DNA of 64,000 nt from Macrostomum lignano (lineage: Eukaryota). The translations under genes were made by a program, and so were the position numbers. This document shows positions 282-62,304 of the stretch, one piece after another. Position 1 is the first letter of the stretch; the number at the start of each line of letters is the position of its first letter. The notes under the pieces are model-generated. The model was not told the DNA's origin. It saw only the letters and a program-made list of their open reading frames with translations, and made no database searches. The DNA is taken from positions 118,257 to 182,256 of the forward strand of contig NIVC01001845.1 in NCBI GenBank assembly GCA_002269645.1. The letters run 5' to 3'.

Positions 282-1322
282 TCAGACGGTCTGGCCCGGA
301 TGGGTCCGCATGTGCCGGCGCAGGTGCGACGAGTCGGAGAAGGCCTTGCCGCACACTGGGCACATAAAATTCTTGGCCGCCGGCGGCCGATGCGTGGCCG
401 GCGCGCCGCCCGGCGTGTGGGCGTGCAGGATATGCCGGCGCAGGTGGTCGGACCTGGCGTAGGCCTTGTCGCAATAACTGCAGCGATGGTCCTTGGTGCC
501 GCTGTGGATCTTGATATGGGTGGTGAGGCTGTAGGACCGGCTGAAGGCCTTGTGGCAGGTCGGGCAGGTGTACGGCTTGGCGTCGCTGTGAATGACGGCG
601 TGCCGCCGCAGCCTGTAGCTGGAGCCGAAGGCTTTGCCGCAGTGTTCGCAGGGAAATGCGCCAGCTGAAGCGGCCGCCTCCGCCGTGTGCGTCGCCATGT
701 GCCGCTTGAGCTTAGCCGCGTCAGCCACAATCTTGCCGCAGGTGGTGCAGGGCAAGCCTCCGGCTGGCTGAGCCTGTTGCTGCTGCAGCTGCTGCTGGGG
801 CATCGGAACAGCCACGACAGCACCGCCGGGCTCAGTCTTGACCCACTGCTGCGGCTGCTGATGCTGCTGATGATGGGCCGCCTGCTGCTGCGGCACACCA
901 GGCTGCTGAGCTTCCACCTTCTGCTGGGGCAGTAGCTGAGCAGTCGGTATGATGAAGGAATGCGGCAAAGCTTGCAGCTTCACGTGCTGGCCAGCCTGGC
1001 CAAAAAAATCGCGCGACCCAGCTGTCAGAGGCATCTGGCCACTCAGCACTTGGCCAGGCAGGACTTGGCCAGATAGCATCTGGCTTGGAAGCATCTGGCC
1101 AGATAGAATTTGGCCAGATAGTACTTGGCCAGACAGGACTTGGCCAGGCTTGACCTCAATTGCCTGAGCATAGCCGCCAGAGGTTGTTGTCACTTGAATT
1201 GGTTGGCCATCTTTGCGGAGAAAGTCGGCAGGAGCACTAGTAATGATAGTATGAGCTGGCAGCAGTGACACGCCATCAGCTGTGATCAGCTGCATGGTGA
1301 ATGGCTGCTGGAATGACGCCAT
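282..1322 (-). CDS. C2H2 zinc-finger protein (5 fingers) with Gln-rich N-terminal half, 346 aa ORF
   Basis: Five C-x2-C...H-x3/4-H motifs (CTTCGK..HMATH, CEHCGK..HAVIH, CPTCHK..HIKIH, CSYCDK..HILHAH, CPVCGK..HMRTH) and an SDAKPY linker; poly-Q tracts upstream. Additional 5' exons cannot be excluded. Confidence 0.9.
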   Translation of the reverse strand: MASFQQPFTMQLITADGVSLLPAHTIITSAPADFLRKDGQPIQVTTTSGGYAQAIEVKPGQVLSGQVLSGQILSGQMLPSQMLSGQVLPGQVLSGQMPLTAGSRDFFGQAGQHVKLQALPHSFIIPTAQLLPQQKVEAQQPGVPQQQAAHHQQHQQPQQWVKTEPGGAVVAVPMPQQQLQQQQAQPAGGLPCTTCGKIVADAAKLKRHMATHTAEAAASAGAFPCEHCGKAFGSSYRLRRHAVIHSDAKPYTCPTCHKAFSRSYSLTTHIKIHSGTKDHRCSYCDKAYARSDHLRRHILHAHTPGGAPATHRPPAAKNFMCPVCGKAFSDSSHLRRHMRTHPGQTV

Positions 1323-11019: not shown

Positions 11020-12976
11020 ATGAGCTGCAGCACGTCTCTAGCGAAGATGATTCTCTTCATCTTTAATATTGTCTTCTTCCTGCTGGGAGCCGCCAGCGTC
11101 GGCGTGGGAATATGGGTTGCCGTCAACAAGAGCGACCTATTTCGAGTCATCAATCTAATCGATGCCCGAGTGGATCAGGGCGACAACAAGGGCCAGATAG
11201 ACTCGGTAGCCAATCAGAACGGCCTGGTCATGGTGGCCGGATTCATTCTCATCGGGATCGGCGCTTTCACGCTAGTCGTGGGCTTCTGCGGCTGCTGCGG
11301 CGCCGTCAAGGAGTCCAAGTGCCTGCTGGGAATGGTGAGGGTTTGTTTGCTGGTTTTGAACGGCTCAGAGCTCTTAAATTTTACGTTGGCTTAGCCGGTG
11401 GGATAAAGGCACATGGTTCGCTTTCGCGTCGCAGGACATTTAGCACTCACATGATTGACATCCCACTATTGACAACTCTGACAGTTTCTAACCAACACCT
11501 TTCGCGCTCACAGCTCTTAGTCGTGCTCTATACAGCTAGTATATTTTACGACTGTAAACATGTAGTAGGTGTCAATCCTTGAATGAATATACCATCAGTA
11601 CTTAAGTAGATTATTTCGATCTTATACGTTTTCTATTGTTGAAAGCTTACCTAGACTCAACTAACATAGCGACATATTATGGTACTTCGATGCGATTACG
11701 TTCCCGCCAACCGTCCGCAGTACGCCTTCCTGGTCGGCCTGGTGCTGGCTGTGGAGGTCGCCGCTGCCATTCTGGCTGCAGTGTACCAGGCTCGCATCCG
11801 CACCGCCGCCGAAGACGGCATGTACGGCCTGCAGGAGAAGATGTTCGTAGCTATGACCGACTACCTAAGCGACTCAACTAGCGATAATAATAAAACTGTT
11901 ACAACCCTGATCAACTATCTGCAGATGTCGGTGAGCTTTTCTGCGCATCTATTGCAGGGTGGGAACTTTATACGATAAATTATGCTGAAATGTTAAAATA
12001 CCACAAAGAGGGTGTCAACTTATGGCTCTAAAGAGGGCCCAAAGTAAAGCTTTGGACCAAACGGACTTCACTGGATACCAATTATCCCCTTTATCCCCTG
12101 GGAGACCAAGAGAGGGAGCTGGACGGTGTGTCTCAGCGTTTTAGCCATCGCTTTGTACGAATCGAGAGTTCCATTGTCAAGAATTAATTTGTTTGATTGT
12201 TTATTGGTGTCCTGTCAAAAGGTTTAGGCCTTCTGTCAGTATTCTATTAAACTGCTGGCTATGACATTCTCTGCAAAATTGCTTCAGTTCGACTGCTGCG
12301 GAGCCAAAAAGCCAGGCGACATTGCCAACAGCAGCAGCTGGCTCCTGTCCAACCGCAGCTGGGAGGGCCGCGAGCTTCAAACGCCCATCACCTGCTGCCA
12401 GATTCGCCAGGATCAAAAGACTGCAGCCGCTGCCCCAGGCTATAATTGGGTTTCCAAACTCAATGGTACTCTAGTGGATCCCAGCTGCCCCTTTACTGGC
12501 ACCACGCAGCACACTAAGGTAAGTTTGTTCTATATGAACCTACTGCTCTCCGTGTGTCAAGCGAGAGCGTCATTCTTTAGGAATGACAATACTGGAAAAT
12601 CCCCCCAACTGAATTACAGACTTGCTACAGTGGCATCATGGATTTCATCGGCAAGTTTGCCGGGCCACTAATTGGCGTCTGCGCTGGCATCGCCGTGTTT
12701 GAGGTGAGTCATTTGTTATTTAACTCTATACGTCACAGGCATGCGAATTTGTAGTCTTTTGCTTTCAATAAATAATTTCCGCAACGCATAAACATCATTA
12801 TTACATGCGTTCCTACTCTCGTAAAGCTCAGAAGGTTCGGAAGATCCTTGATTGAAATACTTCTACAAGACTTAATGAGAATTTATGATCAAAATGAGCC
12901 AATAAAAATCCCATTGCAGCTATTCTGCATCATCGTGGCCTGCTGCCTGGTGAGGGCCATCGAACCGAAGGACTGA
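11020..12976 (+). CDS. Tetraspanin 1 (298 aa); exons 11020-11334, 11721-11930, 12288-12518, 12620-12703, 12920-12976
   Basis: Four hydrophobic segments, GFCGCCGAVKESKCLL loop, EC2 with CCG, TPITCC and two further Cys; all introns GT-AG and phase 0; the joined frame is open to TGA. Confidence 0.93.
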
Positions 12977-15331: not shown

Positions 15332-15654
15332 CTTACAATTACCTATATTTAAGTCGCATTTGAGCGAAAGATGATGATAGATGATAAATTAATATCTACA
15401 AAACTTTCTCTAAACTGCTAAAGACAAAATGCTAGTGTGACCTGAAGTCGAAATCAGCTTAACAACTTTTATCGCGCTCAAATCATAGCCGTCAAACATC
15501 ATGAATTTTACCATAAACCTGGAAGACACTGCGAAATTCTGATTTTTTGAGGAACCATTATGTGTTTAAATTCAAACGCTTGGATTGAGAACGACAAACG
15601 CATAGCCACTTGGGTGTGCTTGCTAAACGAGGACCTCAGTCGGACACCTTCTCA

Positions 15655-17672
15655 ATGAAGCTGGTGCTGCGCATCGCTCTCATTATAATATGCAGCCTGT
15701 CCCTGCTGATCGGACTGGCTCTCGGAGGCATCGGCGTCGGCATTCTGGCCAATAAGACCAAACTGCGCTCCATGATCAACCTGATCGATGTCGGCGAAAT
15801 GGAAATGCTTGAAAAGTACAAGAAAGATGTGGGAGATTTAATCGACAAGTATGACGTAATCTCTAGAGTTGGCATGGCCTTCATCGCCCTGGGCTTTCTG
15901 GTGAGCCTCGTGTCCACCCTAGGATTGGCGGGAGCGTGCATGCTGCAGAAGTTCATTCTTTACGTGGTGAGTAGTTAAGGTATATAAGTTTTCTACTACA
16001 TGTAGGCGTGATGAAGAAGTGTTACTTCTAGAAAAAAGATATTCATAGCAAAAATCTTTGTCCATAACAGTTTTACTCGAATAAGGTGATCTATAAAACT
16101 GAAGAAGTAATTTGTTCTCAGGAAAATGTGCTTTTTTAATGGATTTGCATAGATAATTTTTGCTCCTTGCTTATTGGTCGCCCCGAAAGGAGGCATTTGA
16201 TTGCTAGTAAATTCTGAAAACAGGATTTGACTGTGACAGATTACTTAAACCATATCATCTAGCTACGTTGCGCAAACAAAAAGACTTTAAAGTATCACTA
16301 CAGCAGAAATAACAGCCTCGGAATGAAGAACGAAAATTTCATCATGTTTAATTTTGACCCCGCCAGTACACCGGTCTGATGAGCATCCTGCTCATGGCTG
16401 TCCTCGGTGTTGTCATTTACTGCGGTGTTTTCAAGCAAGAGATCGCCAATAAAATGAAGGATCGGATGCACCAACTGCAGGACAAATACTTCATCTCTAT
16501 CGTGGAACTCTTGAGTAACAAAGAAACTGAAAAGGCGATGCTGACTTTGGCTATCAACTTCATGCATTTTTCAGTGAGTGCTAACATTTTGCAATCAAGC
16601 TTAAATATCAAGGGTAATTTCAGTAGGGAACGAACTGACAATTTCTTATTTAATGCAAAGCTCTCTCCATCGAAATCAACAGCTCAGATGTTGTGGAATC
16701 CGCAAAGTAGGCGACGCTCGTAACAGCACCAGCTGGTTAAAGTCGGAGCGACGAATCATGCAGCTGATGGAGACTGGTGCAGACCTGTTCCAAGGCACTA
16801 AGACTAGTGACTACGATTATGCGGTCTCATCAGAGGTCAGGCACAGACGGTCCGCGATACAGAGCGACATGTACGACTACACCATATTTGATAATTCAGG
16901 CAGCGGAGGCGGGAAAGGCCAGCCGGACTGGATGCGCTACGACGTACCTGAGGAGCTCGAGATGCCGGATAACTATGCTGTGCCAACCATGCTGCCCGAC
17001 GGCTTCGAGATTGATGAAGATGTTTTCGAGGGCCTCACCGAAGTTGTTGAGGAAGTTGTTACTGAAACTGTCAAAGTGGTCACAGAGGTCCTGGACGAGG
17101 CACTGGTGATGCGCACTCCACTGACCTGCTGTCAGATGGAGAGCATCAAAAAGCTGCTTGAAAACGAGTTCGATGTCAGCCAAATGTACGACAGCATGGA
17201 AGAAATTTCCTGCATATTTGAAGAGGAAAACTTTGGCGTCAACAATCAGGTGAGTCTTCTGTGCCAATTTTGATTCCAATTTAACAGATCATTAAGATAT
17301 CAGAAGGAAGCGGTGGCAAGGTAGAATAAATGTAATTGAGTCCTTAGTACATAAAAGTATCCTTGTTGGGCTTTGTCTGGATCAGTTCCAGACCGCACTG
17401 GATGCTAGATTACCAGAACAGAGACATTGAAAATCTTCACACAACCTTCAGACATGCTACGTCGCTCTCTGGAACTACCTTGACCAATACGTCACTCCCG
17501 TCCTGGCCCTAGGCAGCCTTCTGATCATCCTAATGGTGAATTTTCATGTTAGTTTTTGTGCAGCAAAGAGGATGCAACATTTAAAAGGCTTTACTAAAAA
17601 AAAGCATTTCTATTTCAGGCAGTCAGCACGGCACTGGCGCTTGGAATTATTAACCTTGAGAACTCAACCTGA
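15655..17672 (+). CDS. Tetraspanin 2 with greatly enlarged EC2 loop; exons 15655-15966, 16367-16573, 16683-17249, 17452-17535, 17619-17672
   Basis: Same 5-exon, phase-0 layout as tetraspanin 1; CCG, TPLTCC, SC and TCY cysteines; four TM segments; frame open to TGA. The start codon is the first in-frame ATG and an upstream exon is possible. Confidence 0.88.
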
Positions 17673-18503
17673 GGGTCTTAAAATGTTTTGTTATTTTTAT
17701 TGAGTTCCAGCACCCTGTGTGCTGACAAATTTTCTCCAAAAATACACTGTAAGAAATTGTAAAAGGAAAATTATTTTGCAATTGATCGTTTTTGATTTCT
17801 TGTATCGTATTGTATTTTACTGTACTGCAAAAGCAGTGTAGTTAGTCCTGATCTCTAAGACTGATCTCTACTTCTTGCTAAGGAGTTGCTATTTAGTTAT
17901 TGTTTTTTAGACTGAGAAAAATTAACTCATAGTGAAATAATGCTTTTGCAGAAAAAATCAAATAATTTTACCTAATACATGCCTAAATGACAAGACTCAT
18001 GACGAATTTCTCAGGTTAATTGCTGAGATGCCAAAGCTCATGGAGTATCGCTTATCTACGGTAAAATGACCTGACGGGATCGTTTGAACTTGTTCCTTAG
18101 CTGATAAAGTAAAGTAGGCGTGGTATTTTCTGGGCAGTACCAAACGCTGCACAGACTTATCAAAAGCAAACTCTCAGATGAAATTGTAAAAAACGGGGAC
18201 CAAGTTTTCATAGCCACGTTGGCTTTACAAAACTGGCTCAATAATCGCTGCATAGAACTTCCGTGTTCCTCTATGAACTCTTCGAGTCAACAAGCTTTAA
18301 CCCGTAGACACTACTCGGCAAACGATTAGCATTAGCAACTCAATATGTCTGTCAGCAAAACATCTTTACTATAGCCGTGTCAATAAAAAATTCCGGAGCA
18401 TCATTGAAACTCGTACTGTTCAATATTTCATTCAAGTCTGAGCACCTGAGAAGCCAATAACTTAATTGACGCTGAAACAAGGCCAGCAGACAACTTGAGT
18501 CTT

Positions 18504-21043
18504 ATGCCTGCGCCAGCCGCGAACAGTAAATCCTCCTTGAGCTCAAAATTACAGAATCAATGCTGCAGCTCCTGCGCTCAACGCTGCAAGTCGTGTACTT
18601 GCTCAGTGAAGCTGGCGCTGCGCATCGCTCTCATTATAATATGCAGCCTGTCCCTGCTGATCGGACTGGCTCTCGGAGGCATCGGCGTCAGCATTCTGGC
18701 CAATAAGACCAAACTGCGCTCCATGATCAACCTGATCGATGTCGGCGAAATGGAAATGCTTGAAAAGTACAAGAAAGATGTGGGAGATTTAATCGACAAG
18801 TATGACGTAATCTCTAGAGTTGGCATGGCCTTCATCGCCCTGGGCTTTCTGGTGAGCCTCGTGTCCACCCTAGGATTGGCGGGAGCGTGCATGCTGCAGA
18901 AGTTCGTTCTTTACGTGGTGAGTCTTTAGGAAATAATAAAATGCTTTGTTTGCCTGAATTCAAAACTTTAGACATGAAGTGACTTAATTGAACCGCAGTA
19001 CACCGGTCTGATGAGCATCCTGCTGATGGCAATTCTTGGCGTTGTCGTCTACTGCGGTATTTTCAAGGAGCGGATCGCGGAAAAAATGAAGGACCGAATG
19101 CTTAAACTTCAAGACAAATACTTTGTTTCAGTAATTGAACTCGTACAAAACAACAGTACGGTCAAGGCAATGCTCACTTTAGCCGTCAACTTCATGCATT
19201 TTTCGGTGAGTAAGTTTGGCGAATAAAGTATGAAAATATATTAAGCCAGCCAATTACCATATCGCCCATGAGAATTTATGCACTCAGAACACTCAGCTAC
19301 ACACACTTTGAATTCTATGTACACATTGAAGTTTTGAAAAGACAACTCACGATTTCAGTATCTGTGCATGCTCTTGTGAAGAAAGTCTGTCACACAATAG
19401 CCGTAAAATGAATAGCTGTGTCAGTACCATTAGTTGGTTCAAATTTGCTCTATTTTAGCAGTTGGCCCCACAAAAGCATATATTTGACTTTCTTGAATGG
19501 ATTGTAGAAATTAAAGAAAACCTATTGGGAAATTTGTTTCTTGGGCTCTAGAGAAGTTGGGATCTAATTCGCACTAGAGAAGTTAAAATAAAATTGTACC
19601 TTTAAACCTCTGTACATTTTGTTCGTCACCAGCTCAGATGCTGCGGCATCCGCAATGTAGGCGACGCTCGTAACAGCACCAGCTGGAAAAATTCAGAGCG
19701 ACGCCTCATGCAGCTGATGGCGGCTGGGGCGGACCTGTACGCAAGCTCTATGAATGGCGAGAATAGCAACGATTACGATTACCTGTACGAGGGGTTGTTT
19801 GAGGCCAGGTACAGACGGTCTGCGATACAGAGCGACATGTACGACTACACAATATTTGATTACTCGGACTACGGCTCAGGTGCGTCTGGCGGAGCTGGAG
19901 GCGGGCAAGCCCAGCCGGACTGGATGCGCTACGACGTGCCTCCGGAGCTGACGATGCCGCCTGATTATGCTGTGCCGGACATGCTGCCTGGCGGCTTCGA
20001 AATTGATGAGGATCTTTTCGAGGGCCTCACCGAAGTTGTTGAGGAAGTTGTTACTGAAACTGTGAATGCGGTCACAGAGGCTCTGGACAGCGCTCTGGTG
20101 TTGCGCACGCCTCTGACCTGCTGTCAGATGGAGGGCATTAAAAAGCTGCTTGCCAACGAGTTCGATGTGAGCCAAATGTACGACAGCATGGAAGAAATTT
20201 CCTGCATATTTGAAGAGGAAAACTTTGGCGTCAACAATCAGGTGAGATGTTGATGGAGTTGTTTGCATCAGTAATATAGGCTTTGGTGTGTAGTTGGTTT
20301 TTTATAAATGTTAGTTAAAATTTTTGAAAATGATATGGAGCATTTGTTATTATGGAATATAGCAATAGCATTGTGTGGCAAAGTTGGACGCTAGAAATCC
20401 CATCTAAATCTAAGCCATACTCATTTGAGATTTGATGAGAAATAGAAATATGAGAGTAGTGAACTGTCTTGGAGAAAACTGATCCAAGAGCACTGGAGTA
20501 ATAAGACAGAGTGTGGTTTACTCCACTTTAAAATCTCTGCTAATTGGCTAAATACGCTCAAATTTAAAGTTAAAGTAATTGAAGTCTGGTCTATACTAAC
20601 TATTATGCATACGTTACTTACAATTAAATATCAAAGTAGTTGTTAGAAGGAATTGTTTCACACTACTGATTAAGATAAAATATTAGCTCTGTGACGCCTT
20701 TGAATCTGAAGAAAATTAGTGCCTAGAACTGTACGCTGCAAATCTTAGACAGTCAGTAAGTTAGACAAAACACATTTATGCGAACCCGCAGACCTGCTAT
20801 AACGCTTTGTGGCTCTACATTGACCAGTATGTAACCCCTGTGCTGGTTCTGGGAAGCCTTCTAATAGCGCTAATGGTAATTATCACTTTATTTTGACGTT
20901 TTTAAGGCCCATTCACACCATTTTTTCTCTAATCGATTACAAGCAAGCAAGATTTTCATTTTTAGTATATACGAGGCCAACTCCTCCGATGGAGGAGAAA
21001 GGGGAAGAACTCCCATCACCGGAATTCCACCGCCATCAAATGA
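18504..21043 (+). CDS. Tetraspanin 3, paralogue of tetraspanin 2; exons 18504-18917, 18999-19205, 19633-20241, 20792-20875, tentative last exon 20966-21043
   Basis: Exons 1-4 clearly homologous to tetraspanin 2 with matching GT-AG sites. The last exon (YIRGQLLRWRRKGKNSHHRNSTAIK*) is chosen from a strong acceptor and open frame but is not homologous, so it is uncertain. Confidence 0.82.
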
Positions 21044-21572
21044 GTCCAATTTTTGAGTGATCACACAAAATTTCAGTTGATGATTAACGAATCTTTGACA
21101 ATCACCTCAGTTTTTCACGCTATCAACTGACTTTTACAAGTGATCGCAAGCGTTTCACACTGCAATCAACGGACATATACTGAGGAGAATGACTGGGCTG
21201 GGGTTTAGAGGAGGGTCATGCAAGTATTCCAATTTGTTGCGCGAGCAATACTGTGCGCACATATCTCCAGCTGAGCCCAAAATCGTACATATTTTCAGCA
21301 CGTTTGAGAAAAAAATTTTGAGCTTTGAATTCAATACCAGTGTACAGTCTGTATCAGAGTACAAAGGCCAGAGCTCTTATTGATATAACTGTCGCGAGCT
21401 AACAAAAACCCTAGCACCCAAACTTTCCCGATCGTCCATTTTCCTGGTATTTCGATTGTCAGGGTGCCGAAGGTCGTATATAGAGCAGGATTTTCTTGCA
21501 CTTTGTTTACCAGGGGTTCCAGCGGCAACCAACAGGCGCTGTTTTTTTCACGCTTGCTCATTTCACTTATGT

Positions 21573-21958
21573 CAGGGGTCGGAAAACTTTTTTACCCCAA
21601 CGGCCAGATAACAACCTAGAGCATGACTGCGGTCCGGAGGAAGGAGGAGATTAGAGGGAATAAAAAAGAAAGAAGGGAGATAGGAGAAGGGAGAGGCGAG
21701 AGAATAAAGGAGCAATGAGGAAGGTGGAGAGGAGAGATGAATTTAACTAGGAGAGTAGAAAAGAGAAGAGAGAGGGAGAGTAGGAAAGAGAGAGGAGACG
21801 AGAGAGGAGAGAAGAGAGAAGAGAGAAGAGCGCTGAGAAGAGACAAACAACGAGCGGGCCGGATTGCTATTGTGCAGTTTCAAAGGACCGCGAGGGCCGG
21901 ATGAAGAAGCTTTGCGGGCCGCATTTGTGGCCCGCGGGCCGGAGTTTGCCGACCCCTG
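21573..21958. mobile_element. hAT-type MITE with GA-rich interior
   Basis: TIRs CAGGGGTCGGAAAACT / AGTTTGCCGACCCCTG; flanks ACTTATGT and GCTCATGT (6/8 match). Related sequences at about 29145-29500 and 41005-41300. Confidence 0.7.
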
Positions 21959-23320
21959 GCTCATGTGATGGAAAATAATAAAACAGTTAACAACCTGACT
22001 GGTGAGATGGCCAATCAATTTTAAAACGACAATCAGACTAGACGGAGAGTTGTTGAAATAGAGTGGCTTGAGTTGAATTTTGTGTGTTGCGCAACTTGGG
22101 GTGCTGTGTAGGAGGCAAGCGACCAATGTACAGCGTTTTAGTTGATCAACTGGCCCTCGCGTTATTGACTTTTGTCGCTGAATTTGAAAGTATTCTAAGT
22201 TAGCTGAGATTTCAAGTGATCACAGAAAAAGTTAGAAATTCTGCGTGGTCAAACGAGTCGTGTGATTTGGTCTTTCATTTGATTGCAGTGTGAAAGAGCC
22301 TTTAAAACTACTAATTGAAGCCAACACCCACGGCACAGAAAGTGTACAAGCCTGATGATTAGAAGCACAGTGTGAGCCTGCGTACAGTATTGGCGCTTGT
22401 ATGTGCTCAGGGGTCGGCGGAATTTGGCGGAATCGCCTCAACGCTGCTTGTGAGCCGAAGTCGTTGCGTCATCACACGCACGGCAGTCGGACAAATATTG
22501 CTATTGCTATTACTACCATTGTCATTATTACCGTGAATTAAAAGGAGAATTCCTCTGCTACAATTTCAGACAGTCAGCATAGCAACGGCAACAGCGATCT
22601 TGTTAATTGACAGTTAAAGAGACCCGGGCTGCATTTTTTTACTGAAATCTGCACGCTATTCTATTTTGTTTGAAGTGCTTGTTTCATTTTTATTTAAAAG
22701 TAAATTTATGAAAAAATAAGGGAACTTTGCTTTTGATATAACAAATCAGGTTATTGTTTATCATTATTTTTGCTATTACATGTGGCTGTAAGCTTCTATA
22801 AGATTAGCCGAATCTACTTATCTTGCTGATCACCGTGCTTAGAATAATCTTGGCTATAGTGTTAGGCAATAATAAGAGTGTTATATCGTGACTAACTATT
22901 ACCTACGCGTGCCATATTTAGTGCTATATAAGTAGGCGAGTGTCTTTACATTGAAGATCCTTCCCAATGTTTTGAGTCCAAATCCACCAGTCGTCCTAGC
23001 TAGACTACGATTAAGATTTTTTATAATCCAATGAAACTAAATGCTTTAAAATATGCGACTTCCAATTTAGTGAAAAGATTTTTCAATATAAAATGTACTT
23101 TTATTCGGTTACCTTACTTGCTCACTAAGGGTTCGGACGTCTAGACCATAGACTGACTCTTACAGTCCCAGGGAGTGCAGCTCGCAGCCTTGAGTCACCG
23201 CTTTAGAGAATAGACGAGTCCCAAATCAACTCCACTGCAGTAAGCGATAACAGCTTAAACAAGCAACAATCTAAGGAACCTGCTTTGAATCGACACGCAC
23301 TGACTCGTTGAGTTCTCATC

Positions 23321-24511
23321 ATGTCCAAATGCCCACTGGCTGTCACTGGAGTGGACCCCGCCGTGCTCAAGTATCTGGAAGATGGCTTCAAGAAGCTGCA
23401 GAGCAGCTCCACCTGTAAATCTAAGCTGAAGAAGTTCCTCACTAAAGAAGTCTTTGACAATCTAAAGAATCTGAAGACAAAAACCTTCGGGTCTACCCTG
23501 AAAGACGTCATCCAGTCGGGTAAGTTTCAATGAAAAATATAACTAAAGAGCAAATGAAGCGCCTGCTTGAAAGCTTGCCACCCTCAATCCGTCATAGGCA
23601 TCGAAAACCTCGACTCTGGCGTCGGTGTGTACGCCCCAGACGCCGAGGCCTACACCGTGTTTGCCGATCTGTTCGATCCAATCATCCAAGACTACCACGG
23701 CGGCTTCAAGAAGACCGACAAGCACCCCAAGTGCACCATGGGCGATCCGAACAAGTTTGGCGACGTCGATCCCCAGGGCAAATACGTCGTGTCGACGCGA
23801 ATCCGCTGCGGTCGCTCCGTTCAGCAGTTCCCGTTCAATCCCAACATGACCCAGGAGCATTATAAGCAACTGGAGGATCTGGTCTCCAGCACTCTAAAAG
23901 GACTCTCTGGCGAGCTGAAGGGTACCTACTATCCCCTGACAGGAATGACCAAAGATGTGCAGCAGAAACTCATCGACGATCACTTCTTGTTCAAAGAGGG
24001 CGACCGTTTCCTGCAAGCCGCCAATGCTTGCCGCTACTGGCCCACTGGTCGAGGAATCTTTCATAACGACAACAAGACCTTCTTGGTTTGGATCGGCGAG
24101 GAGGACCATATGCGCATCATCTCGATGCAGAAAGGCGGCAACATCAAAGAAGTGTACGCCAGACTAGTTAAGGGCGTCGAAGAGATTGCCAAACGGATGA
24201 AGTTTAGCCACGACGATCGGCTGGGATTCCTCACCTTCTGTCCGACCAACCTGGGCACCACGATTAGGGCGTCCGTGCACATCAAGCTGCCACTGCTGGC
24301 CAAGGGCGGACACGACGCGCTGCAGAAAGTGGCCGACAAATTCCAGTTGCAAGTACGCGGCTCGGCTGGTGAACACTCGGAGGCAGTGGGCGGAATGTAC
24401 GACATTTCCAACCGGGAAAGAATGGGACTCACTGAGTTTGACGCCGTCAGCAAGATGTTCAAGGGCATCACTGAACTCATCCGCATGGAACAGGAGCTGG
24501 AGAAGAAATAA
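23321..24511 (+). CDS. AK: Arginine kinase (phosphagen kinase), 370 aa; exons 23321-23519 and 23598-24511
   Basis: [22 protein letters not shown] guanidino-specificity region, [36 protein letters not shown] and [13 protein letters not shown]; one 78-bp phase-1 GT-AG intron. Confidence 0.96.
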
Positions 24512-35374: not shown

Positions 35375-36643
35375 TCAAGCTAACTGCAGGTTGCTCAGGT
35401 ACGACTCCAGCCTGTTAATCTCATTTTTCAAAATTTCCTCTCGCTCGCGAAATCCCATGTAGCGACTCAGGGCCTCCTCCTCGGCTGCCGCGGCGGCAGC
35501 GGCCCCGGTGAACCGGCGGTGCTGCGGGCCCTGGCTGACGGAGCGCCGGCGGCCGCCACCTCCGCCCAGGTCCCCTGCGCCGGGCCAGTCTTGCTGAAGA
35601 CTCCGGGCCAGGGACTCCACTATCGAGTTGCCTGCGGGGCGGGGGAGGTGCAGACTGCTAGCAGTGCTGGGGCGCCATGTCAGGTGGATCGGGAGGAATG
35701 TGCAGGCTGCATCTGGCGGTGCTGGGGCGCCATGTCAGGTGGATCGGGAGGAATCTGCAGGCTGCATCTGGCAGTGCTGTGTCAGGTGGATCGGGAGGAA
35801 TCTGCAGGCTGCATCTGGCAGTGCTGGGGCGCCATGTCAGGTGGATCGGGAGGAATCTGCAGGCTGCATCTGGCAGTGCTGGGGCGCCATGTCAGGTGGA
35901 TCGGGAGGAATCTGCAGGCTGCATCTGGCAGTGCTGGGGCACCATGTCAGGTGGATCGGGAGGAATCTGCAGGCTGCATCTGGCGGTGCTGGGGCGCCAT
36001 GTCAGGTGGATCGGGAGGAATCTGCAGGCTGCATCTGGCGGTGCTGGGGCGCCATGTCAGGTGGATCGGGAGGAATCTGCAGGCTGCATCTGGCAGTGCT
36101 GGGGCGCCATGTCAGGTGGATCAGGATCTGTTTACAGGACCAAAAAGACCAATATTGAACGAAAACACACGTCAGAACTCAGGCTCAGGTGTGAGTCATG
36201 ACGAGCTCCTCACCCTGCTTCATGGCTCCATCTCCATCCTCTGGCCCAGTTCTCTGCAGGTCTCCGGGCCGGCCCTTGCCCAGCCCGTAGCGCTGGTTCA
36301 GGAAGTACAGGCTGGTGTTGTCAGGCGTCCACTGCCCGACCTTCAGCCTGACGGCCACCTCCTTCTCGTTGTAGTCCTTGCGCAGCTTGTAGTCGGGAAA
36401 GTGCTGCTCAATAATGCGATTGCACTTGTCTACGCTGAGCTCGCTCGGCCCCTTGATCTCGAAGATGCAGAATCGCATGGCCTGCGTGCCTCCGAGCTTT
36501 CTGGTGAGGATTTTGTTTTTAACGGCAAACACGCAGCTGGTGCGGTTGCAGGCGGCCTTGACGCGCGTGTCGCTGAACATTTTCAAGCTGGCGTCTGTGA
36601 TCTGCAGCAGGTACTGCTTCTTGTAGCTTAGTCCGGCGTACAT
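35375..36643 (-). CDS. Uncharacterised protein (at least 228 aa); exons 36643-36214 and 35631-35375
   Basis: Phase-1 donor (CAG G|GTGAGG) matches a phase-1 acceptor (CCCGCAG|GC AAC) to give one open frame with GC-rich codon usage and a C-terminal coiled-coil-like REREEILKNEINRLESYLSNLQLA. Family not recognised; may have upstream exons. Confidence 0.6.
35660..36125. repeat. 55-bp GC-rich minisatellite, about 8 copies, intronic
   Basis: Unit CATGTCAGGTGGATCGGGAGGAATCTGCAGGCTGCATCTGGCAGTGCTGGGGCGC; one copy is truncated. Confidence 0.92.
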
Positions 36644-37321
36644 ATCTTGCAGATCGCTATATTTTAACTATTCTTCTTATTGAAACTTCTGCACTTAATG
36701 CCAATGGTAATAATGCATTTAAGCCTATCCAAGTTAAAGTGGCTTATGAATTACGAGTATAAGGATCGGGGCATAGACAAGACGCAAACTTCTCACGGAA
36801 AAGCCCCGGTTGGGTCATAAAGCAAAATAAAGCAAATTTTAGACAAAGACGTGGACATAGGCAAACTTTTAGATGAAATCAAAATTTATCCCTGTTTATC
36901 ATTTCAAGACAGCATCTTTGGTGTTTAGTAGCATTGAAGACTTTTTATGCCTTTTTAGGGTAATAAAATAGTGAAATTTTAGCATCGGTTCTGATCCTTG
37001 GTTTACGGCTTCCAAAGCGCACCTCAAGTATTCTGTTCTTTGCAAACGTGAATTCTACGCCACTACCTGCATTTTTGTACCTAAAAACAAGAGTCTTGTC
37101 AGACAAAAAGGAAGCGTCATGTAAAACATAAATGAAGCGTCACGTGAAACTTAGGGAGAATTTCTGAAATTTCAAGGCTTAATGTCAGAAGCTACATGTA
37201 GGTTACTCAAAAATTTGCATTGAAAATTGAAATTTAAAAAAGATTATTGCACTAGCTGAGATAAGGATTATTGCACTAGATAAGGAAATTGTTGCATAGC
37301 TTGCTGGGGGTGATTGCCATC

Positions 37322-37710
37322 AGTGGGGATGCTTGCTATCGGGGGGATGCTTGCTATCAGGGGGGATGCTTGCTATCAGGGGGGATGCTTGCTATCGGGG
37401 GGGATGCTTGCTATCGGGGGATGCTTGCTATATCAGGGGGATGCTTGCTATCGGGGGGATGCTTTCTATCAGGAGGGATGCTTGCTATCGAGGGGATGCT
37501 TGCTATCTGGGGTTGCTTGCTATCGAGGGGATGCTTGCTATCGAGGGGGATGCTTGCTATCGAGGGGATGCTTGCTATCGAGGGGATGCTTGCTATCGGG
37601 GGGATGCTTGCTATCAGGAGGGATGCTTGCTATCGAGGGGATGCTTGCTATCTGGGGTTGCTTGCTATATATGGGGGTTGCTTGCTCTCGGGGGATGCTT
37701 GCTCGGGGGA
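37322..37710. repeat. About 17-19 bp minisatellite
   Basis: Repeated GGGGATGCTTGCTATC with variable G-run and spacer. Confidence 0.9.
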
Positions 37711-41690: not shown

Positions 41691-44046
41691 CTAATCCGAG
41701 TCCACCAGGGCCGAGGCGAACTCCTCGTAGTCGATCATCCCGTCGCCGTCAAGATCCGCTGCGGCGATCATCTCGTCGGCCTCCTCCTCGGTCATCCGGT
41801 CGCCGCGGGTTGTTAAAATGCGCCTAGCAAGGGGATGTGTTGCCGGGCGTTTTTTTGAGCTGTCTATTCATACAACATTAAGGCCAAACTTGGCGTAAAA
41901 AATTTATCGCGAGATGTACCAGTAGAAAACAATGTTTAGATATCGATTTAAATGAACGGTTCTTAATTTCTATATAAAATGTGTTTTGGTACCGAAGGAT
42001 TGACAACTGAATTCGAGTCGAAGAAGTTCGATTTGAAGGGGCCGGCTGGCTTGAATTCTGCTTGACTTTTGCTGCTAATATTTCTTATGAGTTTAGTTCT
42101 GGAACTCTTCTAAGTTAACACAATTTCCAGGACACGTGCAGTTTCAAGGACGCAAACGTTAGAGCGTATAATTTACCATTCTGTCCATCTTTCTAGTGGA
42201 CAACATACAAAGTAAAATGTATTTTTAGCGAAATCAGACTTTTATATACCATTGCATTGGACCTAAGAGTTACGTCCTATAATGTATGTTAGAACGGTGG
42301 CTTTTTTAATAGTACATTAATACCCATGCTTTAAGGGCGTTAATGGGAAAATCAGAGGGCGCCGTAATTCCTGCTGTTCCTATCTCTTTAGTGTGTTTTT
42401 GTCTCGAAAGAGTTTCTCTGGCTAAACCCCTTTAAAAGCTATGTAAAGAAGCGAAACTTAGGAAAATCCGTTTAGAAAACACAACTGTACTCGTATCTGG
42501 AGCAGTGCTGCTCTCCAATTAACAGTAGAACTACCAAGGGGGGGGGATTCCCAGGCACACGAAATTCGAGAACACGGGCTAACTTTTTGTCTTCTTAAAG
42601 GTTCCGACGGCGTCCGGGTGATAACGGAATGCTTGAGAAACCAGCTGAGGATGTCCAACAGTCGAGGCTTGATAGGCAAAACTAGAGAAATTCGCATCAG
42701 GGTGTTCATAGTCACCTGGTGCCACCTGTTGAAGGCCCAGAAGCTCCGCCTGGGTGAAGGCCAGTGACCAAAGAAGTCAGAGCTGATGTAGACACATGTG
42801 GTCGACGAGCTGATGAAATTTGGAGACTTGGCAAGGCTGCACTGAGGCGCAGTGCTGATTGACGCACAGGGGTGTACTTAATACACTAGCGCTTATGGGA
42901 TTAATCCGACCTTCTGGCAGAATCGTCGAATATCTCGACGGCCCGGAGGGCTGGCGACTTGATTCTTGTTTGAGAAGGTGCGCAACAAAAAGTTAGCCCG
43001 TGTTCTCGAATTTTGTGTGCCTGCATTGCAAAAAAAATGTCAAGGGGGGGGGGGCGGAGAATCCCCCCCCCTCGGTAGTTCGGCGGGCGAAAAATGGCTT
43101 GGTATTCCTACTGTTAAAAAAACATCCACGGTAACCAACCTGAGCTCCTCAGATGGTATGTAGCCTTTGTTGTCAATGTCGAATACCATAAAAGCACTTT
43201 TGATCTCTTCTTTTGTGACCGGCTTGTTGATGTGGTTGACCATTAGAGAGACGAACTCTGGGAAGTCTATCGTGCCGCTGCCTGCAATATAGAATTTTGA
43301 GTTCATTTTGCTTGATAGTGGAGCACGATATAATTAGGGACTAAGAGTAGAAATCCCATGCAGCATGGTCGGAATCCAGCTCAGGTGGAATCTAGCTCAG
43401 TTGGAATCTAGCTCAGTTGGAATCTAGCTCAGTTGGAATCCAGCTCAGTTGGAATCCAGCTCAGGTGGAATCTAGCTCAGTTGGAATCTAGCTAGTTGGA
43501 ATCTAGCTCAGTTGGGATCTAGCTCAGTTGGAATCCAGCTCAGGTGGAATCTAGCTCAGTTGGAATCTAGCTAGTTGGAATCTAGCTCAGTTGGAATCCA
43601 GCTCAGGTGGAATCTAGCTCAGTTGGAATCTAGCTAGTTGGAATCTAGCTCAGTTGGAATCCAGCTCAGTTGGAATCCAGCTCAGGTGGAATCTAGCTCA
43701 GTTGGAATCTAGCTCAGTTGGAATCTAGCTCAGTTGGGATCCAGCTCAGTTGGAATCCAGCTCAGTTGGAATCCAGCTCAGTTGGAATCTAGCTCAGTTG
43801 GAATCCAGCTCTCTTACCATCGGCGTCCACTTCGTGCACCAGCTTCTCGAGCTCATCTTCGGTGACGTTCTGTCCCATGGACGTCATGATGATGGCCAGC
43901 TCCGAAGTGTCGATGGTGCCGCTGCCATCGTGATCGTACATGCAGAAGGCCTCATAGTACTCGTGAATCTGCTCCTGAGTCAGCGAGCTCATCACATCGT
44001 CCGGATTTCTCGACTGCTCGCGCTTTGACGACTTCTTCTTGCTCAT
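41691..44046 (-). CDS. Calmodulin-like four-EF-hand protein (167 aa); exons 44046-43818, 43281-43140, 41823-41691
   Basis: EF loops DHDGSGTIDTSE, DADGSGTIDFPE, DIDNKGYIPSEE and DLDGDGMIDYEE; exons join in phases 1 and 2 with GT-AG. Too divergent to be canonical calmodulin. Confidence 0.92.
42528..43081. mobile_element. Inverted-repeat (MITE-like) element in intron 2 of the calmodulin-like gene
   Basis: Left GAACTACCAAGGGGGGGGGATTC..AGGCACACGAAATTCGAGAACACGGGCTAACTTTTTGT is mirrored at 42986-43081, with an insertion in the right arm. Confidence 0.7.
43371..43810. repeat. 15-16 bp minisatellite filling most of intron 1 of the calmodulin-like gene
   Basis: Unit GGAATC(C/T)AGCTCAG(T/G)T. Confidence 0.93.
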
Positions 44047-45180: not shown

Positions 45181-45849
<669 letters not shown>

Positions 45850-48464: not shown

Positions 48465-51400
48465 TCAGACAAAGCTCGACGTCATGTAGGGCGTCCTGCA
48501 CACTGCTGGATTGACCACCAGCTCTGCGCCCGTCAGCACGGCATATCCGGCTTTCGGATCGGGCAGCGCTCCTTCGCTCAGTCCGGCGTACCGATTTTCC
48601 TGAACTGCGGCGCCGTGCACTCCCGCGTCGTCCAGGACGTCGCTGCCTTCGCTTGCGCCGTAGACTTTACGCGGCAACCTGTCGGAGCCGAGGGCTCGGC
48701 CTCTGGGTGGGCGAGGCTGCTGCTGCTGGAACGACTCGTAGCCGTTGCAGCTGCGCAGGGTGAGCATCTGGAACTGGTGCCGGCGTTGATGCTTCTGCTG
48801 CTGCGCCTGCTGACTACCTGAGGCCTGTTCGCTTGACGGGTAGTCGGCGAGGTAGCCGAAGCTTGGGAACTTGTCGCGCAGCATGCGACCTGGGCTGCGC
48901 GCCCTGGCGTTGTCAATAACTAGAGTGGCCGAGCCACCGGAACGGCAGCTGTGAGATGGCAGCGCCGGCGGCGGCGACGGTGGTGGCAGCGGCGACACGT
49001 CGGATCCAACAGCTTTGACGATGTCTGGGAAGCGAAACTCGCTGCAGTCGGCAGCGTCGTCGGCCTAAAGATGTTTGGAGTTCGGTTTCACTTGGGGACG
49101 TCAATTAGGGTAGAGTTTTTACTGGCTGAGTAGCGGTTGCTGGAGTGAATTTTGGTGGTTGCGGGAGTGAATTCTGGTGGTTGCAGGAGTGAATTCTGGT
49201 GGTTGCAGGAGTGAATTCTGGTGGTTGCAGGAGTGAATTCTGGTGGTTGCAGGAGTGAATTCTGGTGGTTGCAGGAGTGAATTCTGGTGGTTGCAGGAGT
49301 GAATTCTGGTGGTTGCGGGAGTGAATTCTGGTGGTTGCAGGAGTAAATTCTGGTGGTTGCGGGAGTGAATTCTGGTGGTTGCAGGAGTGAATTCTGGTGG
49401 TTGCGGGAGTGAATTCTGGTGGTTGCAGGAGTGAATTCTGGTGGTTGCAGGAGTGAATTCTGGTGGTTGCAGGAGTGAATTCTGGTGGTTGCGGGAGTGG
49501 ATTTCGATGGTTACGAGGGCAGGTGTCGAATTTTTTACTATTAAAGAATTCATTTTCTAAACAAGATTTTTATATTTCACTGATGATGCTAATGACTCAT
49601 ATTTACTTATAGTTATCAGTTCAGAAAAGCACTCACAAATCTTGTACGAGCGTAGTATTGCTCTAACTTACCGCATCAGCATTTGCCTTGTCGTACCAGA
49701 CGCCATGACTTTCTCGGGTTGCTGATCCACTACCGCCTACATGAAAGGTTTGGAGAAAGTCGACGAGCAATAAGACAGAAAAAATCATCAATGGAGTAGG
49801 GATGATGGAAATTCATCTAAATAAACTGGACTTACCCTTCCGATGAACGTAAATGAGAACTGCTAACAACAGCAGGAAGATAACGAAGACCACAGCTGCC
49901 AGGCAAAGCAAGATAAAGAAGTGTTTGTCCGCGTCTCCAGCTGTTTTTCGCGAGCGATCGCTGCTCCCGGCGCGACCGCTATCCCCGTCGCTTCCCGTTC
50001 TGTCCCCGCCTTGGTTGAACAGCTTGCCAGAGAGAACGCTGACAAAGAGGCTCTCCTCAGGACTGCTCATTGAAGGCCGGCCTCGATCAGTAGCTCGAAC
50101 GACCAGCCGGAAGAACCTGTCTGAACCAGGTGGTTGATGCGGCTGGTTTGGATCCGTCTGCAGCGGTTGCGGTGGCAATTTGAGCAGACCGTTGGTCAGC
50201 GTTACAATGCCATGCGTAGAATCGACGCTGAAGTGGCCGTAGTCCGGACCCACTAATCTGTAAGTCACCGAGCCGTTCTCTCCCGCATCGCGGTCAACGC
50301 TGGCTAAGCGCAGTACCTGTTAAGGAGGATATGGCTGAACTTTTAACTAATGCTAAAAATTACTGTAATCATACTAATACGCATCCAGATTGAGAGCTGA
50401 ACGCAATAAAAATATTCTGCTTAGAAACCATCTACTATCATGTCCAACCTCCGTTCCAGCCGGGCTGCTATCAGACAGGTTGTAGGTGCGTCTGGTTCCA
50501 ACCAGTTGGGGCGCGTTGTCGTTCACATCTAGAAGCGTCACACTGGCGTGTGCCACGCCCTTGTGCTGCCTGGGACCTCTGTTCAGTGCTAGCAAATCCA
50601 GATTGACAACTTCGCGCCTCTCCCTGTCCAGGTTGCCCCGAGCGTAGAGCCGGTTTCCGCGGAAATGGAAGAAGACGCCGTCGCCTGGCTGTGACCGACG
50701 CTCAACTTCGTAGTGTATTTCGCCGTTGTACCCAACATCTGCGTCCGTGGCCTCCACGATCCCAATCATTCTGTCGCTGCTGTTTTGGTCATAGTCTTCT
50801 ACAACTCGGAATGCATACTCCTTCTGAGAGAAAACCGGTGCCGAATCATCCTCATCGTCGATAAGGACCTCCACGGACACCGTGGAAGTCAGTCGGACCT
50901 TGGCCCCGTTGTCCTCGACAGTCATCGCAAACGCGTAAGTGTGGCGTGTCTCACGGTCGAATGCCAGTCGAGTGTGCAACTCAGCTGCAAACGGCGGTCG
51001 CGGGTTGAGGCTGAAGAATTGTTCACCAATCGCGTCCAGTCGGAAGCTGAGCCGGCTGTTTTCGCCGGCATCTTGATCGTTTGCAGCTACTCGCCCAACG
51101 AAGGTGCCTTCTGGATGATTCTCTTGGACGTGAAAACGATAGCTCTTTAGCTCGAATTCGGGTCGGTTGTCATTCTCGTCTATTATACGCACCGTAACAG
51201 GGCGTCGAGTCTCTCGCGGCGTTGGCTTGCCTCGGTCCTGGCAAACGAGCTCTAAACGGACGGTGTCGCTGCCTTTCTCAATCCCTGAACCGGAGCCTTC
51301 CCTGTCCAGCTGAGTGCCATGCAACTTACGTAGCTGATAAAATGTTTGATGTGGCCCGTCGGAAATTCTTTGCGTCAGCTCGAAATATCGATTCATCGGC

Positions 51401-52569
51401 TCGGCCACCAAACAATCAACTGTTCCGTTCTCGCCTGCGTCCTCATCTCGAACCTTTACTCGGGCGATCAGCTTGTCTGTAGAGTCATTCTCGAGTACTG
51501 TTGCGTCAATTAATTTGATGCTCACGTTCGGATAGTTGTCGTTACAATCTGAGACGCGCACTTCGATGTCCGTTTCTGACTTGAGCCCTCCGAAATCCTT
51601 AACTACCAATGGAACGTAGAGAACCTTGGCTCCCAGGGTTTCGTAATCCAACGAGCGATTCTGCCTTAGCTGATTGCCAGAGATGTAGAATGAGCGACCA
51701 ACCTCCGGGCTGGCTGTGCTGGCAATGCTGAATCTGTGCCGCTTGTCCTCATCTGCATCCGTTGCATCAAGCTGCAGTAGCGGCCCATGCAATTCACTGC
51801 ATTCAGAAACTATCAGCGTTGTGCTGGAGAGCCGAAACTCTGGACGATTGTCATTGGCGTCGAGTACCTGAACCAGGATATCTGAACGGTCTTGTTCCTC
51901 GGGGAACTGTGCGTCGGCTGCTACCAGCGCCATTTTGTAAGAGTCTTTTGTCTCTCGGTCCAGAGATTGATGAAGCTCTAGCCTGGGAACAGTTCGGCCT
52001 CCACGAGGCACAGTTACCAGACGGAAGTATCGCCCGGCCTCGCCACTGAACTCCAGATTGTATGTGATAGTGTCGTGCCCAGTGGAGTCCAAGTCTTCTG
52101 CGGCTGGCAGTGAGTAGTGGCTCGGCGGGTTGTCCGACTCAGCGATGCTGATGCGGAACGGCTTGTCTTTCGGGTGGAAGGTCGGCCGTCGGTCATTCAC
52201 GTCGCGGATGTTGATGTGGACTGAATAGATCTCGTTCTCGTTGTTGTCGCTCCGGTGGACCTCGGCGTTAAATCTGCGCTCGCAAATATTCAGCTTGCTG
52301 CCCGAGCACAGGACTTCTCGGTCCAGACGATCGCGGGTTCGAATCTCTCCGGTACCTCCGTCTAGCTGAAACAAGCGACGGATTTCCTCCGTCGGAAAGC
52401 TGATCCCGAAACGACTGCCATCCGGTAGGCTGAACCGACTTTTCAGGTTTCCGATCACTTGGTTCACTGGAGTCTCCTCGTCCACCTCCAGCGTCACAGT
52501 CTGGGGTGGCTGGCCGGCCGAAACAGCAATGAAAAAAAATAAAACAGAAATTAAAGCCGCTTGATGCAT
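48465..52569 (-). CDS. Protocadherin with 7 cadherin repeats (1088 aa); exons 52569-50449, 50316-49836, 49736-49672, 49064-48465
   Basis: Signal peptide, repeated LDRE/LDYE, DxNDNxP and DxDxGxNG Ca-binding motifs, Cys pair in EC1 (VLCSGSKLNIC), TM segment FFILLCLAAVVFVIFLLLLAVLIYV and cytoplasmic tail ending SSFV; exon phases are consistent. Confidence 0.92.
49134..49500. repeat. 22-bp minisatellite in protocadherin intron 3
   Basis: Unit TGAATTCTGGTGGTTGC(A/G)GGAG. Confidence 0.93.
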
Positions 52570-55989: not shown

Positions 55990-56960
55990 AAGTGACTGAA
56001 CCAACACTCATCCAACCCTGTCTGCTACCGTGGTGCAGCATCAGGGCGAGGATTGAAGCCTCAATTCTGCAATTTTCCAACAATCTGACACTAGAAAATC
56101 TGCCAGCTGGTTTGAAATAAAAGCTATTCAAAACTTTAGATTTACAGCATCTACCTTAAAAGGCTGAAAATTTACCACTCAAAATTTGCTCCAACTGACA
56201 GCTCTTGGACCTGCCAATCAACTGTTGTCCCTCCAAGCCGGCCCCGGAATCACCCTACCCCACCACCCAATTATCCCACTTGTCCACACCGATGCATGCA
56301 TCATCAGCAGCTGCGGTGGGACACTTCGCTGCGCCATCTCATCATCCGCTGGGCATTTTCGGGCCGCGCAGAGTTGGAGAGAAAAGAGAAAGCTGCACTG
56401 GGAATCCCAGCGGCCCACCTGAACGGAAGGATAAGCACCCCAGCCCCCCATGGTGTTTGTGTTCCGCATGTGGCTCTGCTGGCATCTGGCGGGCCCATTT
56501 CTTTCTCCATCGCTGATTCGCCTCCTCTATCCATCTATCTGTCCGCCTGTCTGTCTGGCTGAATGTTTCTGTGCCGGGTGCCGTTTCATTTCCGGCAATC
56601 GTTTGTCCGCCAGCCAGAACCCCCCCCCCACCACCGGCCTCCTGCCAGTCAGGCAGATCTGCGGCTTTTAATTAGCGTTCAATGGCCCGGCCGGGTTGAA
56701 CACGGGCGCCGCGACATGGCGGAAAAGTCGCTTTGCCTGTTCCTGGCCGGGGACCAATCGAGCTCGGATGGAACGGCTAAGTAACCGATGGTCTGCTGTG
56801 ATCTTTGCTTCTGGCCGTCTGAACATTATGGATCCAATTAGCCGTGGCTGCGGCCCGGTTGTTGATGACAATGGACTGGCATCGACCGGATAGCTGGGTC
56901 GGTTGTAGAAACCGTCTGGCGACGTCATTGTCAAAGTCAGAACTGGTGCTTCGTTTCATT

Positions 56961-59560: not shown

Positions 59561-60082
59561 CCATTAGCGATTGTTTTGGCAGGATCAATCGAGAGGAATC
59601 TAACTGTAAATACAATATGCTAGACATCCTACTGACTGAATCTACTGAGTAGCATGTAGCGCGTGAGCTCTGAATTATTTTTCAACTATTTTCAAGAAAA
59701 AAGAATGTAATTTAATAAAGTGTTGCTATTTTTGGCAACAGGCTGCGCTCCTCAAGCCGAAATTTTAGGAAGGATTAAGCACGCTATCGCGGACTGTTCC
59801 AAGCTAAAAAGAACACAATGCCCACTTTTGTTAGGTTTAGCTTTCGAGAGCTTTTTTATGAGCACTCGCAGTTACTGTCTCTGTCTCTCTCAATCTCTCT
59901 CTCTTAAGTTCTCTGGTTGCCATGGAAACGATCGTATATTTAAGGCTCAAGTTTCTTTTCCGTGTTCCTTTTTAATCTGTCTGCACCCATGCCTTTCGCA
60001 CTTATTTTGCATGGCTGTGTCTTGGAGCAAATACTAATGTGGACTCAATCTGCATTGGTTTTTGACTGCCTCTTCCGGAAGA

Positions 60083-61629: not shown

Positions 61630-62304
<675 letters not shown>

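Follow-up and report, generated by a model that had tools for sequence, protein, structure and literature searches.

A candidate convertase cleavage site between acidic tyrosine clusters in the long loop insert of two tandem tetraspanins of Macrostomum lignano

We analysed a window of 64 kb from the spliced, eukaryotic genome of Macrostomum lignano (assembly GCA_002269645.1, contig NIVC01001845.1), in which two tetraspanin genes, here called copy 1 and copy 2, lie in tandem. The large loop of both encoded proteins contains a long acidic insert, and within the insert a basic tetrad of proprotein-convertase type, RHRR in copy 1 and RYRR in copy 2, is followed by the same 14 residues, SAIQSDMYDYTIFD. 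This RxRR-SAIQSDMYDYTIFD block is an island of protein-level constraint beside a fast-evolving upstream flank. With somewhat less than even confidence, and reasoning from sequence, we read it as a functional linear motif at which flanking tyrosines would be sulfated and the chain would be cut after RxRR, the two resulting chains being kept together. Positions given below are those of the window, on the + strand unless marked (-).

Direct reading and translation bore out the preliminary description of the two sites. In copy 1, RHRR (R226-R229, encoded by AGG CAC AGA CGG) occupies 16839..16850, with the predicted cut after 16850, and the SAIQSDMYDYTIFD block, which includes Y237 and Y239, follows at 16851..16892 and would form the new N-terminus if the chain were cut. 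In copy 2, RYRR (R266-R269; AGG TAC AGA CGG) lies at 19807..19818, and SAIQSDMYDYTIFD (19819-19860) runs on into a YSDY found only in this copy (Y284 and Y287; together 19819..19872). Both tetrads give the full convertase consensus R-x-R-R, with basic residues at P1, P2 and P4 and serine at P1', so that the sequence prerequisite for a convertase site is present. The flanks upstream of the sites differ in length and content, as had been described, with indels of 4 and 2 residues before the site, and a further indel of 8 residues separates the copies 3' of the SAIQSDMYDYTIFD block. Each protein contains one R-x-[KR]-R. When the insert is shuffled, this pattern turns up in 1.0-1.5% of trials, and when the entire protein is shuffled, in about 4%. 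Of about 100 related tetraspanins compared, P0022 (RSKR) is the sole other one that carries it after the CCG motif. The tetrad also holds three of the six arginines of an insert whose net charge is -18 in copy 1 and -20 in copy 2. The motif thus exists as described and departs modestly from chance; as paralogues, the two copies do not count as independent samples.

Both proteins are members of the tetraspanin family, and every defining feature tested was present. Copy 1 scores 69.6 bits with the Pfam family Tetraspanin (PF00335; E = 4e-19), for which the cut-off is 32.1. Hydropathy gives four hydrophobic segments in copy 1, at about residues 1-33, 67-98, 99-131 and 372-405, and the equivalent four in copy 2, and the AlphaFold2 helices agree with these membrane segments. 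C176, C177 and G178 (the CCG motif), together with C322, C323, C350 and C364, are invariant in 8 aligned M. lignano tetraspanins, and the nearest solved chains by profile are CD53, TSPAN7, CD81, CD9 and UPK1B. The two proteins thereby resemble six-cysteine tetraspanins (CCG ... CC ... C ... C; CD63/TSPAN7-like), sharing with them the four helices, CCG, four more invariant loop cysteines and a PF00335 score above the cut-off; what sets them apart is the acidic stretch of 125-139 residues inserted after the CCG region and ahead of the second pair of cysteines.

The large extracellular loop (LEL) of copy 1 extends from about residue 126 to 375, some 250 residues, and the insert occupies its variable part, in the interval that separates the CCG cysteines from the following pair. 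Exon 3 encodes it in both genes. The site lies, as had been proposed, inside the large loop, between the third and fourth transmembrane (TM) segments and after CCG. Exon 3 of copy 1 (16683..17249) contains CCG (16689-16697), the 125-residue insert and, beyond it, the second pair of cysteines (17127-17132) as well as the fifth LEL cysteine; in copy 2, exon 3 (19633..20241) contains CCG (19639-19647) and an insert of 139 residues. The inserts hold 27-28 Asp and Glu and 7-10 Lys and Arg. The interval from NS(T/S)SW to the second Cys pair, 125 and 139 residues in copies 1 and 2, is about 20 residues in ordinary relatives, namely the third tetraspanin of the window and P0004-P0008. We considered whether the insert might be an unspliced intron or a captured domain, and rejected both: the frame is open, the ratio of non-synonymous (dN) to synonymous (dS) divergence is below 1, two genomic loci differ in this exon by 5 synonymous and 0 non-synonymous changes, and no other Pfam family matches. 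In AlphaFold2, residues 209-284 are coil with a predicted local distance difference test (pLDDT) score of about 25, and a long acidic helix comes next, at 285-313; 8 sequences underlie the model, whose mean pLDDT is 53. The insert is thus predicted to be unstructured and, in the present data, appears restricted to one flatworm lineage.

The RxRR tetrad falls in the coil part, between two groups of cysteines (C176/C177 before it, C322/C323/C350/C364 after it), and is probably exposed. Since these invariant cysteines flank the site, a cut protein could stay disulfide-linked. In solved tetraspanin loops such as that of CD81, the CCG cysteines pair with downstream cysteines, and by likeness to them we infer that disulfides would span the RxRR. 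By the topology usual for the family the site would be extracellular, and the basic, Cys-rich N-terminal tail of copy 2 is consistent with the usual placement of the N-terminus inside. The preliminary description had proposed that the loop is cut in the Golgi, giving a two-chain, disulfide-held tetraspanin with a sulfated new N-terminus; with an extracellular, probably exposed site and conserved cysteines on both sides, the geometric prerequisites of this idea appear to hold.

The history of the gene pair bears on why the block is alike in the two copies. The copies resemble each other in exons only, introns and flanks failing to align, and dS is high in exon 2 (1.15, with dN 0.16) and in exons 4-5 (1.3, with dN 0.31); the duplication is therefore old. 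Exon 3, with the insert and the site, has dS 0.36 and dN 0.12, and exon 1 has dS 0 and dN 0.017, with 0 synonymous and 4 non-synonymous changes. Exon 1 of copy 1 lies in a recent gene-conversion tract (15638..15972) that is 97.3% identical, without synonymous differences, to its partner in copy 2 (18589..18923). A second locus (L002, on NIVC01001210.1), about 98% identical to the window, has the same tandem pair and the same loop proteins. Two synonymous variants of exon 1 read GAT and CTT in both copies of the window (15789/15810 and 18740/18761) and GAC and CTC in both copies of L002 (8001-8318 and 10941-11258). Because these variants are common to both copies within a locus and different between loci, conversion is recent and ongoing. 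Homogenisation of exon 1 runs separately at the two loci.

It had been suggested earlier that the identity of the block might come purely from a recent conversion tract. Conversion in exon 1 and the lowered dS of exon 3 lend this some substance, but the block itself, over 18 codons, carries 2 synonymous changes and 1 non-synonymous change, with a proportion of synonymous differences (pS) of 0.20, like the rest of exon 3; a purely recent tract does not fit it. Non-synonymous divergence is lower in the block (dN 0.023) than in the 52 codons preceding it (0.234; P = 0.005), and the sole replacement in the block is the H/Y change at P3, the free position of the convertase consensus. Between L002 and the window, exon 3 of copy 1 shows the 5 synonymous and 0 non-synonymous differences mentioned above, non-coding DNA differing by about 3%, which indicates that the loop exon is under purifying selection. 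These observations also bear on whether the site has any specific function at all. It could be a leftover of concerted evolution in the tandem pair, with RxRR having arisen by chance in a loop that is lineage-specific, of low complexity and quick to evolve. The active conversion of exon 1 speaks for such an origin, as do a dS in exon 3 that is 3-4 times below that of exons 2, 4 and 5, the lack of the site in the paralogues P0002 and P0003, and the frequency of the motif in whole-protein shuffles, all the more since a 64-kb scan offers many chances. Yet a neutral block should, at the local dS of 0.2-0.3, have gathered about 9 non-synonymous changes, and it shows 1, non-synonymous divergence is ten times higher in the upstream flank, and exon 3 differs between loci at synonymous positions only. 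We therefore regard a site without specific function as unlikely.

Tyrosines in acidic context stand on both sides of the site. DYDY precedes both tetrads, as had been noted, 6 residues upstream in copy 1 (Y217 and Y219; 16809..16820, on the P side of the site) and 8 residues upstream in copy 2 (Y255 and Y257; 19771..19782, followed by LYE with Y259), and forms a candidate sulfation cluster. Tyrosines adjoin Asp or Glu in 5 of 6 cases in copy 1 (P = 0.04) and in 9 of 11 in copy 2 (P = 0.002), above the expectation from shuffles. In scoring tyrosines by the classical sulfation rules, we required the residue at -1 to be acidic, 3 or more acidic residues to lie within +/-5, basic residues to be few (at most 1), and Cys and N-glycans to be absent from the vicinity. 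All of this holds for Y219 and Y239 in copy 1 and for Y255, Y257 and Y279 in copy 2, so that the acidic setting that sulfotransferases prefer, as earlier claimed, is present at several tyrosines of each copy. Y259 of copy 2 has Leu at -1, Glu at +1 and 4 acidic residues within +/-5; Y284 and Y287 of copy 2 are directly preceded by Asp, with no more than 2 acidic residues in their vicinity.

The insert contains a second basic element, the dibasic SERR (residues 194-197 of copy 1, 16743-16754, with an equivalent in copy 2), directly after the NSTSW sequon. A double cut at SERR and RxRR would excise some 30-40 residues including DYDY, in the manner of the inhibitory tract of ENaC or of a prohormone peptide. 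SERR is kept in copies 1 and 2 and in P0002, and the SERR and RxRR clusters together hold 5 of the 6 arginines of the insert. SERR lacks the P4 Arg, however, and hence is no furin site; it falls in a predicted helix (189-208, AlphaFold2); its retention in P0002, which has no second site, makes a structural role more likely; and no part of the exon is less conserved than the segment between the two clusters (dN 0.23), which is not what one expects of a bioactive peptide. Excision by two cuts is on this evidence very improbable.

To learn how far the site extends among relatives, we turned to homologous proteins. The nearest other proteins are the M. lignano paralogues P0002 (PAA79579.1, 35% identity) and P0003 (PAA88730.1, 29%), which have the distal half of the insert in common with copies 1 and 2: PDW..., a proline-spaced segment LP..P.GF.I..DF, the helix and TP(L/I)(T/S)CC. 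A profile of the loop found M. lignano paralogues only and no loop relatives outside this species. In a representative protein search, only M. lignano appeared among the top matches of readable source, P0005 and P0007 coming from Logan runs. Homologue searches with the whole protein and with the loop alone gave no match, and did not return the window's own proteins either. The locus L002 is not an independent test of the motif. The sequence evidence for conservation of RxRR is weak.

Several observations weigh against the reading of the block as a sulfated and cleaved motif. P0002 and P0003 are without the DYDY-RxRR-SAIQSDMYDYTIFD half of the insert, P0002 having a deletion there and P0003 an unrelated sequence. 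Among the sequences available, RxRR is confined to the tandem pair and the 98%-identical L002, which falls short of the conservation looked for in convertase substrates, and all evidence comes from one species, as two paralogues and that second locus. Synonymous differences in exon 3 are fewer than in exons 2, 4 and 5 (dS 0.36 against 1.15-1.3; P = 1e-5), and the similarity of the copies there therefore comes partly from earlier homogenisation. The three Arg codons are identical in nucleotides, so that selection on Arg is inseparable from shared ancestry. Constraint on the block is not significantly higher than on the downstream insert (P = 0.23), and the block is one of three identical runs of at least 16 residues in exon 3, the others having 16 and 29. 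The AlphaFold2 model is poor, and its low confidence may reflect lack of information rather than disorder. Lastly, Glu at P6 and the acidic surroundings of the tetrad are suboptimal for furin.

Some of these points also favour a block that is conserved but uncleaved. The basic tetrad and the Tyr/Asp-rich segment would then serve the insert in binding or in folding, say as a peptide that binds a partner or as a basic patch that docks on the acidic helix 285-313, and the match to the consensus would be incidental. The constraint data fit this equally well and do not discriminate between it and cleavage. Other blocks of the insert, FEGLTEVVEEVVTETV, QPDWMRYDVP and NEFDVSQ...NNQ, are as conserved as the site block or more so and have no cleavage motif; the acidic P6 and flanks point the same way, and our literature search found no convertase-cut or Tyr-sulfated tetraspanin loop. 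Against it, convertases are ubiquitous and an R-x-R-R|S that passes exposed through the secretory pathway could hardly be shielded from them, such motifs are nearly absent from the loops of related tetraspanins (1 of about 100), and the only change in the tetrad falls at a position that the protease does not read. An uncleaved element is, on balance, a real possibility, though not one that we would call probable.

If the block is instead a functional linear motif in an exposed loop that is sulfated and cut, as we tentatively prefer, maturation could proceed as follows. During passage through the trans-Golgi, the flanking tyrosines (DYDY and DMYDY, and in copy 2 also DYSDY) would be sulfated, and a furin-type convertase would then cut after RxRR. 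Both products would be held in the membrane, one consisting of TM1-3 and the proximal loop, the other of the distal loop and TM4, and they would be joined by the loop disulfides that bridge the site, so that nothing would be shed. A closed loop would in this way become two free, highly anionic tails able to bind a partner protein. The further idea of the preliminary description, a tethered ligand or activation switch, did not find support, tetraspanin being the only Pfam family at E <= 1; to ascribe signalling or a tethered ligand to these proteins would be pure speculation.

Tetraspanins are treated as uncleaved scaffolds whose choice of partner is set by the variable region of the loop. An acidic, disordered insert that is opened by a convertase and sulfated would, if it exists, be a new way of making a tetraspanin binding surface. 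That these proteins are the first tetraspanins matured by proteolysis, with two chains linked by disulfides and by the membrane and with freed ends bearing sulfotyrosine clusters that capture partners, is a doubtful proposition at present, suggested by sequence features. The present case comes down to four residues in a single gene pair of a single species, and amounts to a reasonable hypothesis for those already studying the animal, no discovery. A literature search for Macrostomum convertases or a sulfotransferase gave nothing usable, and no expression data for the two genes were found when their gene ids were searched in M. lignano papers and the other literature covered. Stable transgenesis exists for M. 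lignano (PMC5730564).

Both gene models were built on canonical GT-AG introns. Copy 1 (15655..17672; 407 amino acids), modelled from its splice sites, has exons at 15655-15966, 16367-16573, 16683-17249, 17452-17535 and 17619-17672, and its product is identical to PAA63420.1 (BOX15_Mlig034462g1; P0094). Copy 2 (18504..22617; 453 amino acids) has exons at 18504-18917, 18999-19205, 19633-20241, 20792-20875 and 22570-22617, and its product is identical to PAA63421.1 (BOX15_Mlig008214g1). An exact-protein look-up placed both proteins on NIVC01001845.1. The N-terminus of copy 2 carries a Cys-rich extension of 34 residues, QCCSSCAQRCKSCTCS (18504-18605), probably a juxtamembrane palmitoylation cluster, and the ATG of copy 1 (15655) corresponds to a GTG in copy 2 (18606). 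Three public models (UniProt A0A1I8JCT8, A0A1I8GFX2 and A0A1I8GD49) fuse both genes into double tetraspanins of 778-798 residues. Each copy comes with four helices and ends in a last exon and a stop codon of its own, which makes these fusions an annotation artefact; on the same grounds, and because NCBI annotates two genes, we rejected the arrangement suggested by the fused models, in which the copies would be mutually exclusive exon clusters of one gene. In the region 8001-14417 of L002, PAA70722.1 is likewise mis-modelled, its exon 1 coming from one copy and its exons 2-5 from the other. On the opposite strand, open frames of 127 and 130 codons, at 16896-17279 (-) and 19876-20268 (-), lie over the acidic part of exon 3 in the two copies and are most likely a by-product of its GAN-rich codon composition.

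In the public annotation, the tandem pair is flanked by a third tetraspanin upstream and an arginine kinase gene downstream. The third, divergent tetraspanin gene (about 11038-12680) encodes 298 amino acids in that annotation and is P0008-like; its loop is ordinary and short, with CCG...NSSSW, about 20 residues, and then TCC. A large arginine kinase exon (Pfam ATP-gua_Ptrans) was found at 23567-24511 (+), its best match among solved structures being 4rf6, an arginine kinase, followed by 4wo8, a taurocyamine kinase, both of two domains. Farther away, an open frame of 731 residues at 50374-52569 (-) has several cadherin domains and a FAT4-like N-terminal domain, and the next frame downstream, at 49813-50268 (-), resembles the membrane-spanning and cytoplasmic part of the cadherin protein. 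A C2H2 zinc-finger exon at 282-1322 (-) encodes at least 4 fingers and an N-terminal part that is repetitive and rich in Gln. Tandem repeats abound in the second half of the window and make long spurious open frames; the repeats are located at 45181-45849, 61649-62304, 56959-57984, 35661-36126, 37306-37703, 43371-43811, 49135-49503 and 60080-60768, and include (TGTC)x167, (TCTG)x165, a 22-mer x46, a 55-mer x8.6, an 18-mer x22, a 16-mer x28, a 22-mer x17 and a 31-mer x23.

Several known systems share parts of the proposed arrangement. The tetrad of copy 1 is identical to the convertase site of human pro-TGF-beta1, RHRR (PMC5798290). The pro-TGF-beta1 site lies in a flexible linker, and the tetrad here falls in a segment modelled as coil. 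Tethered-agonist receptors (protease-activated receptors and adhesion G-protein-coupled receptors) differ from the M. lignano proteins, which have four helices in place of a seven-helix core, no GAIN domain, and tetraspanin as their only Pfam match. Procholecystokinin is tyrosyl-sulfated and cut by prohormone convertases (PMC8052576). It and progastrin likewise have basic processing sites beside acidic Tyr clusters in a protein of the secretory pathway, but they are soluble and release peptides, whereas the M. lignano pair would be tethered on both sides and has no amidation signal. Sulfotyrosine clusters also occur in acidic, disordered receptor segments, as in PSGL-1, the N-termini of chemokine receptors and GPIb-alpha. 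Several tyrosines flanked by Asp or Glu in an extracellular segment predicted to be unstructured are common to these and to the M. lignano insert, where they are candidate sulfation sites. In ENaC alpha and gamma, furin cuts an extracellular loop between two membrane helices and the fragments stay in the complex; activation involves two cuts that release an inhibitory tract. The topology of the loop site is the same here, but the M. lignano proteins, with one R-x-[KR]-R each, lack the pair of sites and form no channel. Furin substrates that stay as two associated chains include, besides pro-TGF-beta1, integrin alpha subunits, the insulin receptor and Notch at S1. As in these, the products of the M. 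lignano tetraspanins would be expected to stay together through cysteines on both sides of the cut, with the difference that here the site lies in a loop between two TM helices of a multi-pass protein, so that both candidate products would also be anchored in the membrane.

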